Source of the DNA: Pecten maximus
Lineage: Eukaryota
DNA length: 64,000 nucleotides
NCBI RefSeq assembly: GCF_902652985.1
Contig: NC_047023.1
Location: 21,204,001 to 21,268,000 of the forward strand
Direction: 5' to 3'
Notes under the pieces: model-generated
Seen by the model: only the letters and a program-made list of their open reading frames with translations
Told to the model about the DNA's origin: nothing
Database searches by the model: none
Shown here: one piece after another, positions 1,141 through 51,850 of the stretch
Layout: every line of letters starts with the position of its first letter
How positions within the stretch are numbered: the first letter of the stretch is position 1
Made by a program: the position numbers and the translations under genes

Positions 1141-1419
1141 AGCAGGGAAATCGAAGGATAACTTACCTCAGTTATACCTATATAATATCCTCTACAATGT
1201 AAAGAGGGGCAGGGACGGATTACTTACCTCAGACATTGGTGTTATACCTATATAATATCCTCTACAGTGTAAAGAGGGGCAGGGAAGGATAACTTACCAC
1301 AGTTATACCTTTATAATATCCTCTACAGTGTAAAGAGGGGCAGGGAAGGATTACTTACCACAGTTATACCTTTATAATATCCTCTACAGTGTAAAGAGGA
1401 ACAGGGAAGGTTTACTAAC
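1141..1419 (-). repeat. ~61-bp tandem repeat derived from the EPB41L4A exon 6 end plus donor
   Basis: Four units TAGAGGATATTATA...G|GTAAGT...cttccctgcccctctttacactg, homologous to exon end TAGAGGACACTATA...TG|GTTAGT. Confidence 0.8.
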
Positions 1420-1537
1420 CAAAGGCGTTTGTGTAATGCTGATATAGTGTCCTCTAGCTCCTCTGTTTGGTTGGGTACAAATCGAAACTCAGAAACATAA
1501 CCTTGTGCCAGTCGTTGGTCACAATCTCCCAGCTCAG
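1420..1537 (-). CDS. EPB41L4A: EPB41L4A-like exon 6
   Basis: SELGDCDQRLAQGYVSEFRFVPNQTEELEDTISALHKRL|gttagt. Confidence 0.92.
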
Positions 1538-1980
1538 CTACAAGAACACATTACATGAACATTTATTTCTGTTGTGAAAGATATATTCTGCTTAAACTAA
1601 GATAATTTCCTGATATGAAAATAAGGTTGAATTGTGTAAACATGCAGTATATGTGAAATTATGTCAACTACAGCAAAGTCATGTTAACACCAAGCAGTGA
1701 TGTCCTAGAACAGTACTAAGCATTCTTATCATCACAAAGAACATATGATCTGCATATCATGCATGGCCTGTCCTTCAGCTACGTCACATTTTCTACTAAT
1801 ATCATGATCAGTCTAACATATGCTGTGTACAGGGCCTATCCCAAAGCATGACACTTATTAAACCCATACAATTATATATGCTGGGTACAGGGCCTATCCC
1901 AAAGCATGACACTTATCAAACCCATACAATTATATATGCTGGGTACAGGGCCTGTCCCTCAGCAGTTTGTGTTCACTCAC

Positions 1981-2078
1981 ATTGAACGGCATAAGCGAAG
2001 AGTTCAGCAGCTTCTTCAAAGGTCACTGGGAGGCGACCTTGAACAATGTCACGTTTCACCTGCAGGTAAAACTGGTAC
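1981..2078 (-). CDS. EPB41L4A: EPB41L4A-like exon 5
   Basis: YQFYLQVKRDIVQGRLPVTFEEAAELFAYAVQ|gtgagt; FERM-M. Confidence 0.93.
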
Positions 2079-46676: not shown

Positions 46677-46774
46677 TTATTTGCGGTACCACATTTGAAA
46701 TATTCTCATTCTCTTGATTTTCTTCTGTAGTTGTAGCACTCCATATAACAAAGCTTCTGCTGTGGGTGGACATC
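46677..46774 (-). CDS. NDUFS7: NDUFS7 exon 6 (terminal)
   Basis: tttcag|[32 protein letters not shown]. Confidence 0.96.
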
Positions 46775-46873
46775 CTGAAACACAAGTACATAAACTTTAC
46801 TGACAACCGGAGCAATCCTGGTGGTAATAGGTACAATTTTTCTTACAAGGTACATTGTATAATTAAACACAAT

Positions 46874-49800
46874 GTATCTAGATGTATGATACGATTACGG
46901 CCTCGGACTACTGAAACCACTCACCAGGTACATAAATATCTACAGGTATAATACGATCACAGCCTGGGACTACAGAAACCACTCACCAGGTACATAAATA
47001 TCTACAGGTATAATACGATCACAGCCTGGGACTACAGAAACCACTCGCCAGGTACATAAATATCTACAGGTATAATACGATCACAGCCTGGGACTACAGA
47101 AACCACTCACCAGGTACATAAATATCTACAGGTATAAAACGATCACAGCCTGGGACTACAGAAACCACTCACCCGGTACATAAATATCTACAGGTATAAT
47201 ACGATCACAGCCTTGGACTACAGAGACCACTCACCAGGTACATAAATATCTACAGGTATGATACGATCACAGCCTCGGACTACTGAAACCACTCACCAGG
47301 TACATAAATATCTACAGGTATAATACGATCACAGCCTCGGACTACAGAAACCACTCACCAGATACATAAATATCTACAGGTATAATACGATCACAGCCTC
47401 GGACTACAGAAACCACTCACCAGGTACATAAATATCTACAGGTATAAAACGATCACAGCCTTGGACTACAGAAACCACTCACCAGGTACATAAATATCTA
47501 CAGGTATAATACGATTACAGCCTCGGACTACAGAGACCACACACCAGGTACATAAATATCTACAGGTATAATACGATCACAGCCTCGGACTACAGAAACC
47601 ACTCACCAGATACATAAATATCTACAGGTATAATACGATCACAGCCTCGGACTACAGGGACCACTCACCAGGTACATAAATATCTACAGGTATAATACGA
47701 TCACAGCATTGGACTACAGAAACCACTCACCAGGTACATAAATATCTACAGGTATAATACGATCACAGCCTCGGACTACAGAAACCATTCACCAGGTACA
47801 TAAATATCTAGAGGTATAATACGATCACAGCCTCGGACTACAGAAACCACTCACCAGGTACATAAATATCTACAGGTATAATACGATCACAGCCTCGGAC
47901 TACTGAAACCACTCACCAGGTACATAAATATCTACAGGTATAATACGATCACAGCCTCGGACTACTGAAACCACTCACCAGGTACATAAATATCTACAGG
48001 TATAATACGATCACAGCCTCGGACTACAGTTACCACTCACCAGATACATAAATATCTACAGGTATAATACGATCACAGCCTCGGACTACTGAAACCAGGT
48101 ACATAAATATCTACAGGTATAATACGATTATGGCCTCGGACTACAGAAACCACTCACCAGATACATAAATATCTAGAGGTATAATACGATCACAGCATTG
48201 GACTACAGAAACCACTCACCAGATACATAAATATCTAGAGGTATAATACGATCACAGCCTCGTACTACAGTTACCACTCACCAGATACATAAATATCTAG
48301 AGGTATAATACGATCACAGCCTCGTACTACAGTTACCACTCACCAGATACATAAATATCTAGAGGTATAATACGATCACAGCCTCGTACTACAGTTACCA
48401 CTCACCAGATACATAAATATCTACAGGTATAATACGATCACAGCCTCGGACTACAGAAACCACTCACCAGATACATAAATATCTACAGGTATAATACGAT
48501 CACAGCCTCGGACTACAGAAACCACTCACCAGATACATAAATATCTACAGGTATAATACGATCACAGCCTCGGACTACAGTTACCACTCACCAGATACAT
48601 AAATATCTACAGGTATAATACGATCACAGCCTCGGACTACAGAGACCACACACCAGGTACATAAATATCTACAGGTATAATACGATCACAGCCTCGGACT
48701 ACAGAAACCACTCACCAGATACATAAATATCTACAGGTATAATACGATCACAGCCTCGGACTACAGGGACCACTCACCAGGTACATAAATATCTACAGGT
48801 ATAATACGATCACAGCATTGGACTACAGAAACCACTCACCAGGTACATAAATATCTACAGGTATAATACGATCACAGCCTCGGACTACAGAAACCATTCA
48901 CCAGGTACATAAATATCTAGAGGTATAATACGATCACAGCCTCGGACTACAGAAACCACTCACCAGGTACATAAATATCTACAGGTATAATACGATCACA
49001 GCCTCGGACTACTGAAACCACTCACCAGGTACATAAATATCTACAGGTATAATACGATCACAGCCTCGGACTACTGAAACCACTCACCAGGTACATAAAT
49101 ATCTACAGGTATAATACGATCACAGCCTCGGACTACAGTTACCACTCACCAGATACATAAATATCTACAGGTATAATACGATCACAGCCTCGGACTACTG
49201 AAACCAGGTACATAAATATCTACAGGTATAATACGATTATGGCCTCGGACTACAGAAACCACTCACCAGATACATAAATATCTAGAGGTATAATACGATC
49301 ACAGCATTGGACTACAGAAACCACTCACCAGATACATAAATATCTAGAGGTATAATACGATCACAGCCTCGTACTACAGTTACCACTCACCAGATACATA
49401 AATATCTAGAGGTATAATACGATCACAGCCTCGTACTACAGTTACCACTCACCAGATACATAAATATCTAGAGGTATAATACGATCACAGCCTCGTACTA
49501 CAGTTACCACTCACCAGATACATAAATATCTACAGGTATAATACGATCACAGCCTCGGACTACAGTTACCACTCACCAGATACATAAATATCTACAGGTA
49601 TAATACGATCACAGCCTCGGACTACTGAAACCACTCACCAGATACATAAATATCTACAGGTATAATACGATCACAGCCTCGGACTACAGTTACCACTCAC
49701 CAGATACATAAATATCTACAGGTATAATACGATCACAGCCTTGGACTACAGAAACCACTCACCAGGTACATAAATATCTACAGGTATAATACGATCACAG

Positions 49801-51850
49801 CCTCGGACTACAGTTACCACACACCAGGTACATAAATATCTACAGGTATAATACGATCACAGCCTTGGACTACAGAAACCACTCACCAGGTACATAAATA
49901 TCTACAGGTATAATACGATTACAGCCTCGGACTACAGAGACCACACACCAGGTACATAAATATCTACAGGTATAATACGATCACAGCCTCGGACTACAGA
50001 AACCACTCACCAGATACATAAATATCTACAGGTATAATACGATCACAGCCTCGGACTACAGGGACCACTCACCAGGTACATAAATATCTACAGGTATAAT
50101 ACGATCACAGCATTGGACTACAGAAACCACTCACCAGGTACATAAATATCTACAGGTATAATACGATCACAGCCTCGGACTACAGAAACCATTCACCAGG
50201 TACATAAATATCTAGAGGTATAATACGATCACAGCCTCGGACTACAGAAACCACTCACCAGGTACATAAATATCTACAGGTATAATACGATCACAGCCTC
50301 GGACTACTGAAACCACTCACCAGGTACATAAATATCTACAGGTATAATACGATCACAGCCTCGGACTACTGAAACCAGGTACATAAATATCTACAGGTAT
50401 AATACGATTATGGCCTCGGACTACAGAAACCACTCACCAGATACATAAATATCTAGAGGTATAATACGATCACAGCATTGGACTACAGAAACCACTCACC
50501 AGATACATAAATATCTAGAGGTATAATACGATCACAGCCTCGTACTACAGTTACCACTCACCAGATACATAAATATCTAGAGGTATAATACGATCACAGC
50601 CTCGTACTACAGTTACCACTCACCAGATACATAAATATCTAGAGGTATAATACGATCACAGCCTCGTACTACAGTTACCACTCACCAGATACATAAATAT
50701 CTACAGGTATAATACGATCACAGCCTCGGACTACTGAAACCACTCACCAGATACATAAATATCTACAGGTATAATACGATCACAGCCTCGGACTACAGTT
50801 ACCACTCACCAGATACATAAATATCTACAGGTATAATACGATCACAGCCTTGGACTACAGAAACCACTCACCAGGTACATAAATATCTACAGGTATAATA
50901 CGATCACAGCCTCGGACTACAGTTACCACTCACCAGATACATAAATATCTACAGGTATAATACGATCACAGCCTTGGACTACCGAAACCACTCACCAGAT
51001 ACATAAATATCTAGAGGTATAATACGATTACGGCCTCGGACTACTGAAACCACTTACAAAGTACATAAATATCTACAGGTATAATACGATCACAGCCTCG
51101 GACTACAGAAACCACTCACCAGGTACATAAATATCTAGAGGTATAATACGATCACAGCCTCGGACTACAGAAACCACTCACCAGGTACATAAATATCTAC
51201 AGGTATAATACGATCACAGCCTCGGACTACTTAAACCACTCACCAGGTACATAGATATCTACAGGTATAATACGATCACAGCCTCGGACTACAGAAACCA
51301 CTCACCAGGTACATAAATATCTACAGGTATAATACGATCACAGCCTCAGACTACTGAAACCACTAACCAGGTAGATAAATATCTACAGGTATAATACGAT
51401 CACAGCCTCGGACTACTGAAACCACTAACCAGGTAGATAAATATCTACAGGTATAATACGATCACAGCCTCGGACTACAGAAACCACTCACCAGGTACAT
51501 AAATATCTTCAGGTATAATACGATCACAGCCTCGGACTACTGAAACCACTCACCAGGTACATAAATATCTACAGGTATAATACGATCACAGCCTCGGACT
51601 ACAGAAACCACTCACCAGGTACATAAATATCTACAGGTATAATACGATCACAGCCTCGGACTACTGAAACCACTCACCAGGTACATAAATATCTACAGGT
51701 ATAATACGATCACAGCCTCGGACTACAGAAACCACTCACCAGGTACATAAATATCTACAGGTATAATACGATCACAGCCTCGGACTACTGAAACCACTCA
51801 CCAGGTACATAGATATCTACAGGTATAATACGATCACAGCCTCGGACTAC
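46874..51850 (-). repeat. 62-bp tandem array (~80 copies) of the NDUFS7 exon 5 3' end plus donor
   Basis: Unit GTAGTCCGAGGCTGTGATCGTATTATACCTGTAGATATTTATGTACCTG|GTGAGTGGTTTC(T/A); the first unit is the real exon end. Confidence 0.97.

Follow-up and report, generated by a model that had tools for sequence, protein, structure and literature searches.

Why should a gene carry its own splice donor several dozen times over, in tandem, along the very intron which that donor opens? The question is raised by a 64-kb stretch of the scallop Pecten maximus (contig NC_047023.1, positions 21,204,001 to 21,268,000; hereafter the window), taken from an assembly of 918,306,378 bp in 3,983 contigs. Here, the gene for NDUFS7, a component of complex I, and an EPB41L4A-like gene each have a tandem array that starts at the donor end of an exon and runs on into the intron. 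An earlier note on this DNA had counted three such loci and had suspected in them an undescribed system tied to splice donors. Our answer is a more ordinary one. Namely, the scallop arrays belong to a known type of repeat and not to an undescribed system, and we consider it on balance probable that they are junction ("mirage") minisatellites, which come from ordinary local tandem duplication, are tolerated through use of the first donor and are filtered out elsewhere in genes.

The larger of the two arrays lies in NDUFS7, where the following parts can be told apart (window positions, as for all coordinates below):

53156..53337, minus strand: NDUFS7 exon 4, approximate ends, ending ...NKMAPALRK (motif search of the minus-strand translation)
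51802..51937, minus strand: NDUFS7 exon 5, the source of the repeated unit, ending ...VDIYVP + G (Pfam PF01058, Oxidored_q6, E 4e-10, profile positions 61-112)
46875..51850, minus strand: 62-bp x 80.6 junction minisatellite (Tandem Repeats Finder score 8510, 94% matches)
46775..46874, minus strand: unique tail of NDUFS7 intron 5, acceptor AG at 46776-46775 (intron tail aligned with the unit)
46677..46774, minus strand: last coding exon of NDUFS7, (G)...WYRK and then the stop (sequence and frame reading, motif search)

Exon 5 ends in the donor CTG/GTGAGT, the slash marking the exon/intron boundary, and the array starts at 51850, that is, inside the exon. Each unit consists of the last 48 nucleotides (nt) of this Pfam-supported exon followed by the first 14 nt of the intron, donor included, and the end of the exon itself is the first copy. 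For this reason, all further copies are intronic, lie on the transcribed strand and bring a donor with them; the earlier note is right that such arrays run in the downstream direction only, but this is a consequence of geometry. The motif GGTGAGT is kept intact in approximately 66 of the 80 units. Eleven nt ahead of the donor, the first unit has a C and the later units a T. At the far end of the array the last unit is degenerate, its donor having decayed to TTGTAAG, and approximately 71 nt of unique sequence then lead to the acceptor. Since there is so little unique sequence between the last unit and the acceptor, the ancestral intron 5 was probably shorter than 100 nt; its length is now 5,027 nt.

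Which of these many donors would the cell use? The last coding exon is in frame only when joined to the first donor, and a frame read on past this donor is closed by a TAG after five codons. What is more, a single Oxidored_q6 exon was found in the genome. Taken together, the readthrough stop and the single copy of the exon imply that the first donor must be the one in use, as far as can be read from frames and copy number.

The second locus is smaller and its exon more diverged from the repeat:

1420..1537, minus strand: EPB41L4A-like FERM exon 6 (ELGDCDQRLAQGYVSEFRFVPNQTEELEDTISALHKRL), with the weak donor TTG/GTTAGT at its end (sequence; frame continuity with 631..544)
1153..1421, minus strand: 61-bp x 4.3 junction minisatellite (Tandem Repeats Finder; exon-to-unit alignment)
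544..631, minus strand: next EPB41L4A-like exon, (C)GLRPYQAEHKFLDKVKWLDMYGVDLHPVM (in frame from the first donor only)

We take exon 1420..1537 to be EPB41L4A-like from its resemblance to FERM proteins; its 38-residue piece is without a Pfam match. The unit begins at the donor and is recognisably exon-derived across 14 nt only (12 of 14 matches, shuffle p 0.011), and we therefore word its origin with care: it is probably exon-derived but diverged. All four later copies have decoy donors of the form G/GTAAGT, the G preceding the GT being at 1359, 1298, 1228 and 1167. In terms of donor score, the authentic site, within 1411-1423, reaches 4.1 bits and each of the four decoys 9.9 bits. Given that the frame is kept from the first donor only, the 4.1-bit site must win over four decoys that are much closer to consensus. 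In both genes, splicing from the first donor to an acceptor in unique, non-repeat sequence would give a correctly joined coding sequence, and use of the first donor at both is what we infer from the reading frames. The earlier description of the two arrays (62 bp in about 80 copies and 61 bp in about four copies, with nearly every unit keeping a consensus donor) is borne out. Two further short arrays were seen near the preceding EPB41L4A-like exon (2078..1981). One, of 58 bp x 2.4 copies at 1818-1958 on the minus strand, starts 22 nt past the donor of this exon and excludes the donor; the other, of 35 bp x 2.4 copies, lies approximately 90 nt upstream of its acceptor.

The third locus proposed in the earlier note, the first exon of a putative receptor gene, is a different matter. 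A field of 32-bp units lies here upstream of an open reading frame (ORF) with seven predicted transmembrane (7-TM) segments:

39791..39998, minus strand: 32-bp x 6.4 array, units CACAG/GTAAGTC (Tandem Repeats Finder, sequence, profile search)
39040..39264, minus strand: 32/38-bp units of the same 32-bp family, 6.7 copies by Tandem Repeats Finder, CAG/GTAAGTC (same evidence)
38072..38432, minus strand: diverged 32-bp x 11 sub-family, CACAG/GTAAAT (same evidence)
36268..37437, minus strand: 389-residue 7-TM ORF downstream of the 32-bp field (ORF list; language-model features)

The field spans 40,000 to 38,090 in one orientation, with decayed copies between the three cleaner blocks, and contains GGTAA 23 times on the minus strand and not once on the plus strand. 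In the first copy of the 39791..39998 array the site reads CAG/GTAATT, at 39990/39989, and later copies have GTAAGT. The ORF has no match in Pfam or PDB; it is nearest to rhodopsin-family receptor clusters (language-model feature score 0.96 to 7tm_1 clusters) and may, by such features only, be rhodopsin-like. A 5' untranslated intron containing the field would be in keeping with the good candidate acceptors near 37926 and 37617. The 32-bp units are real and a junction array is plausible here, but we find no evidence for the 29-nt first exon proposed at approximately 40018-39990, which is putative, and the derivation of the unit from an exon is unproven. By eye, a tRNA-like B-box stretch interrupting the field at 39400-39540 (minus strand) had suggested a short interspersed element; ARAGORN finds no tRNA there and we do not retain it. 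In terms of format, the window arrays all consist of head-to-tail units within the 10-160 bp of a junction-spanning minisatellite (62 bp x 80.6; 61 bp x 4.3; 32 bp x 6.4, 6.7 and 11), and the unit sequences at the three loci differ from one another.

Are the two genes in the window alone in this respect? Two arrays from our genome-wide listing, L022 and L024, were examined in sequence context. The CUB-domain exon of L022 (E 1.5e-5) has ...CTCAAG/GTAAGT at its end, and 39-bp units follow directly, each ending ...CTCAAG/GTGAGT. L024 has over 30 copies of a 41-bp unit, with 19 exon and 22 intron nt in each, behind the end of a HYR-domain exon (E 7e-5). In both, the exon ends from which the units derive are Pfam-supported, and real exon ends are found at four of the five arrays examined, counting those of the window. 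The exon-derived share of the unit varies from 48 of 62 nt to at least 14 of 61, approximately 19 of 41 and approximately 15 of 39 nt, so the breakpoint lies at no fixed distance from the donor. As read from these few units, such scattered breakpoints speak against a mechanism that cuts at the donor itself. L022 also holds an array of the opposite kind. Namely, in L022:1-1011 a 25-bp unit in at least 40 copies, composed of the last approximately 11 intron nt (..TTATAG) and the first 14 exon nt, ends exactly where an LDL-receptor class A exon starts, and the donor-spanning array of the same gene lies 450 bp downstream of it. Acceptors can consequently be amplified too, and donors are not the only sites at which the process operates.

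How surprising is it to meet such arrays in one window? Tandem Repeats Finder, run on the window and on twenty random 10-kb stretches (L002-L021), 264 kb in total, returned 101 arrays with a period of at least 10, or approximately 380 per Mb. Their share of the sequence is 24.7% over the 264 kb and 26.8% over the twenty random stretches, and several arrays are longer than 4 kb. One can argue that, at such a density, arrays simply nucleate at random and that three in one window are a post-hoc cluster. Indeed, random placement at approximately 380 arrays per Mb with 35-bp units would put approximately 1.3% of donors inside a first unit, which means thousands of cases genome-wide, and the window was singled out for its three cases. 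In a random 200-kb sample there was likewise no excess: none of 76 arrays had a donor score of at least 9.8 bits, with 1.2 expected, and at 7 bits there were 6, with 7.1 expected. These six, with scores of 7-8.7 bits, were also considered as junctions and rejected, none having an exon-like open frame upstream. That said, a window with 12-18 donors should contain 0.16-0.24 junction arrays, the probability of two or more being 0.011-0.024 (post hoc), and both of the arbitrarily chosen arrays, L022 and L024, sit at Pfam-supported exon ends. A further point against mere coincidence, which we regard as very improbable, is the genome-wide test, in which three donor motifs beat all non-donor motifs on two measures.

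In this test we counted triple periodic occurrences of 8-mers with gaps of 12-42, each motif being controlled by its own reversed pattern:

AGGTAAGT, donor: 11,245 matches against 981 reversed, ratio 11.5, a figure that uses a low-end control (981 matches) and overstates the typical effect
AGGTGAGT, donor: 6,296 against 2,260, ratio 2.8
AGGTATGT, donor: 19,155 against 8,438, ratio 2.3
AGGAAAGT, single-base dead variant: 1,459 against 784, ratio 1.86
AGTGAAGT, permuted: 3,132 against 2,308, ratio 1.36
TTTTCAGG, acceptor-like: 311 against 476, ratio 0.65
AGGATAGT, permuted: 2,849 against 5,146, ratio 0.55
GAAGATTG, random permutation: 714 against 1,333, ratio 0.54
TTTTTCAG, acceptor-like: 448 against 881, ratio 0.51

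Raw match counts weight long arrays and the spread of the null is wide (714 to 8,438 matches), and hence we relied on ratios and on counts of unit families. By ratio, the donors are the top three of nine motifs (rank p 0.012), with a geometric mean of 4.2 against 0.79 for the non-donor motifs. Counted as distinct unit families among the matches listed, they reach 0.69-1.56 per Mb against 0.09-0.33 per Mb for controls and are the top three of eight (rank p 0.018); pooled, the values are 1.06 and 0.10 per Mb, an approximately 10-fold difference. Counts of two-copy minus three-copy occurrences point the same way, with 3,286 runs for the donor and 475 for its reverse. One control count is inflated by a 34-bp unit family containing AGGATAGT, found on contig 1 at 2.48-2.73 Mb at six or more separate loci, which is a dispersed, probably element-borne satellite. 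Two other readings were considered and rejected: the GC content of the units explains at most a 1.5-fold difference, and a single mobile family or introner-borne satellite does not agree with the fact that, across the initial 5.1 Mb of contig 1, the eight donor arrays have unrelated units. Indeed, the units share nothing across loci apart from the donor, which argues against one mobile family in general. In short, the excess of donors in arrays, approximately 2- to 10-fold, is real and moderate. The non-random association with donors proposed in the earlier note is in this sense upheld, both by the ratios (2.3 to, at its somewhat overstated upper end, 11.5, against 0.51-1.86) and by the coding exon ends at L022 and L024. 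Of the enrichment that it had asked for, the genome-wide 8-mer excess is present and that in the random 200-kb sample is not; of a process tied to donors, the enrichment of donor motifs stands, and an exclusive tie falls with the acceptor-spanning array of L022.

Could the donor itself be a mutational hot spot, with some germline process at the 5' splice site making local tandem duplication several times likelier at junctions than elsewhere? Co-transcriptional R-loops, polymerase pausing at U1-bound sites and chromatin boundaries at exon edges would be candidates. The rank of the donor motifs on both measures favours such a view. What is more, arrays contain the dead variant AGGAAAGT 7.7-fold less often than AGGTAAGT, and the latter is as common in the genome as its reverse when counted as a single word (59,377 and 58,024 occurrences). 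Arrays that leave the donor out and lie past it, by 22 nt in one case and 4 nt in another, together with the one that spans an acceptor, suggest instability near junctions as well. However, the scattered breakpoints show no anchoring at the donor, the random sample had none of the 1.2 donor-like arrays expected among its 76, and the control motifs vary as widely as noted above. Weighing these points, we find a donor-linked hot spot unlikely.

A second way to obtain an excess of donors would be selection, with arrays of U1-binding sites kept for a benefit to the host gene. Such a benefit might consist in stronger exon definition, in the suppression of premature cleavage and polyadenylation in AT-rich introns, or in back-up donors, micro-exons and stepwise splicing. 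In its favour, CACAGGTAAGTC is, by profile search, better conserved than any other part of the unit in the old 32-bp field. The unit joints, too, are suggestive: as the earlier note had seen for NDUFS7 and EPB41L4A, and as holds likewise for the unrelated array L024, a pyrimidine run and (C/T)AG are followed by a short pseudo-exon and a donor, and the 48-nt pseudo-exon of NDUFS7 keeps the frame. On the other hand, the inclusion of that micro-exon would duplicate the cluster-binding segment of an essential complex I subunit, and in the young NDUFS7 array the decoy donors are not better conserved than the rest of the unit (2.1% against 3.1% variant cells). Per-position variation thus gives no signal of purifying selection on these decoys, which is what one expects of inert copies and which, within this one array, speaks against strong selection on them. 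As for stepwise splicing, an array of recursive sites (YAG/GTRAGT) was considered and rejected: the AG of the joint is followed by TAGTCC in NDUFS7, with the next GT 48 nt away, and in L024 the GT is 14 nt away. As judged from these joints, the absence of the AG/GT juxtaposition speaks against recursive splicing. Finally, the comparable pseudo-sites of human F7 are silent (PMC1557585). A selected function for the decoys appears to us, all in all, quite improbable.

We return to local duplication followed by tolerance. A piece of 32-62 bp that includes both the 3' end of an exon and the adjoining 5' splice site would be duplicated in place, presumably by replication slippage or unequal sister-chromatid exchange, and the duplicated junction would then expand like any other minisatellite, in a genome approximately a quarter of which consists of such arrays. 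Provided that the spliceosome takes the most upstream donor, the later copies would be inert intronic decoys and the gene would survive. Within an exon, and in most cases across an acceptor too, such a duplication would harm the mRNA and could be expected to be removed, and the lack of enrichment of acceptor-like 8-mers in arrays (0.65 and 0.51 of the reverse) fits a filter of this kind. The main visible effect would be intron inflation, as in the probable growth of NDUFS7 intron 5 by almost 5 kb.

Several observations, however, weigh against this account. Most importantly, a filter only removes arrays and cannot lift donor arrays above neutral controls, where we find them (2.3- to 11.5-fold, the latter with its low-end control, and approximately 10-fold by families). 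Unit GC content, at no more than 1.5-fold, does not make up the difference. Gene-richness looks too small an effect as well: the EPB41L4A gene body has 0.57 arrays per kb and random DNA 0.38. In addition, the weak authentic donor of EPB41L4A (4.1 against 9.9 bits) strains the assumption that the first donor wins. Duplication and tolerance thus leave the several-fold excess of donor arrays over neutral controls unexplained, and a junction-linked mutational bias or weak selection may be its source.

What would follow if the excess were taken at face value? Splice donors in this scallop lineage could be true hot spots, or selected havens, of minisatellite birth, with several per cent of introns growing from approximately 100 nt to kilobases as their own exon/intron junctions are copied. 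We advance this as a tentative possibility; if true, introns would expand by this route across the lineage, which would at the same time maintain a stock of decoy donors, pseudo-exons and potential new introns. More modestly, the genome seems to hold of the order of a thousand or more mirage minisatellites, enough for a statistical test of mutational against selective explanations. The two window genes are also natural experiments in the choice of 5' splice site: in one, which encodes an essential part of complex I, 79 near-identical decoys come after the donor, and in the other four consensus decoys come after an authentic donor that is weak. Should the donor excess stand up to a count based on a proper annotation, junction amplification would be shown to drive part of the intron size in a genome rich in minisatellites.

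Some further features of the window may be recorded here. A near-identical element of approximately 6 kb is present in two inverted copies with identical ORFs (13073-19285 and 56161-62153), the first of them bordered by 21-bp minisatellites at 12943-13072 and 19289-19632. At 40524-41587 and 42286-42435 (plus strand) there is a 63-bp x 17 array with two frames open for 363 and 294 codons; these frames are open because 63 is divisible by three, and there is no evidence of coding. A mariner-type transposase remnant lies at 33120-33668 (plus strand; Pfam Transposase_1, E 3.6e-8), and ORF fragments resembling ribosomal protein S15 at 25569-27210 (plus strand), with Tandem Repeats Finder arrays in none of the introns.

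As to the claim of an undescribed system, minisatellites that span splice junctions are documented in both human and amphioxus, and the claim has to be given up. In human F7, Borensztajn et al. (PMC1557585) described a 37-bp variable-number tandem repeat in IVS7 whose first monomer spans the exon/intron boundary, so that the donor is repeated within the intron, and listed similar cases in IFI6 (6-16) intron 2, CBS IVS13, LMNB2 and PDGFA intron 4. The F7 pseudo-sites are functional yet silent, the most upstream of identical donors being chosen by 5'-to-3' scanning; IFI6 and CBS, for their part, also make use of the first two pseudo-sites (PMC1557585). Internal tandem repeats at human exon-intron boundaries can alter splicing or modify introns (PMC2812944). 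In amphioxus, Ebner et al. 2010 (PMC3087553) reported "mirage" minisatellites in the globin genes BflGb6 and BflGb9, with units that span an exon-intron boundary, measure from tens of bp to approximately 160 bp and in many cases keep the AG/GT signals. Donor and acceptor boundaries can both be amplified, splicing is undisturbed and the mechanism of origin is called "unclear" (PMC3087553). Earlier work on mirages in amphioxus Adh3, and the model of Rogers for intron gain by tandem duplication of an AG/GT segment, are cited in that paper. Our literature search, made in an incomplete library, found no report of a genome-wide donor excess or of junction repeats in molluscs.

How, then, do the scallop arrays compare with these systems? 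With recursive splice sites and U1 decoys in long introns they share the many consensus 5' splice sites on the sense strand of an intron, but recursive sites need a 3' splice site that directly abuts a 5' splice site (AG/GT), whereas in the scallop the AG of the joint is followed by a pseudo-exon of 14-48 nt. With intron gain by tandem duplication they share the duplicated segment that creates extra splice signals; in the scallop, however, no new intron results: one that was already there becomes longer, and the coding sequence stays as it was. The minisatellites of the human F7 type are closer, with a first monomer that spans the junction and, as a result, further donors in the intron. They are isolated cases, however, and mostly short, and the F7 mutants cover only partly the configuration seen at EPB41L4A, where the authentic site is weaker than its decoys. 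The mirages of amphioxus are alike in their boundary-spanning units and, given the acceptor-spanning array of L022, in that donor and acceptor can both be amplified. What the scallop adds to them is a mollusc, an array of 80 copies over 5 kb in an essential gene, and an excess of donors measured genome-wide.

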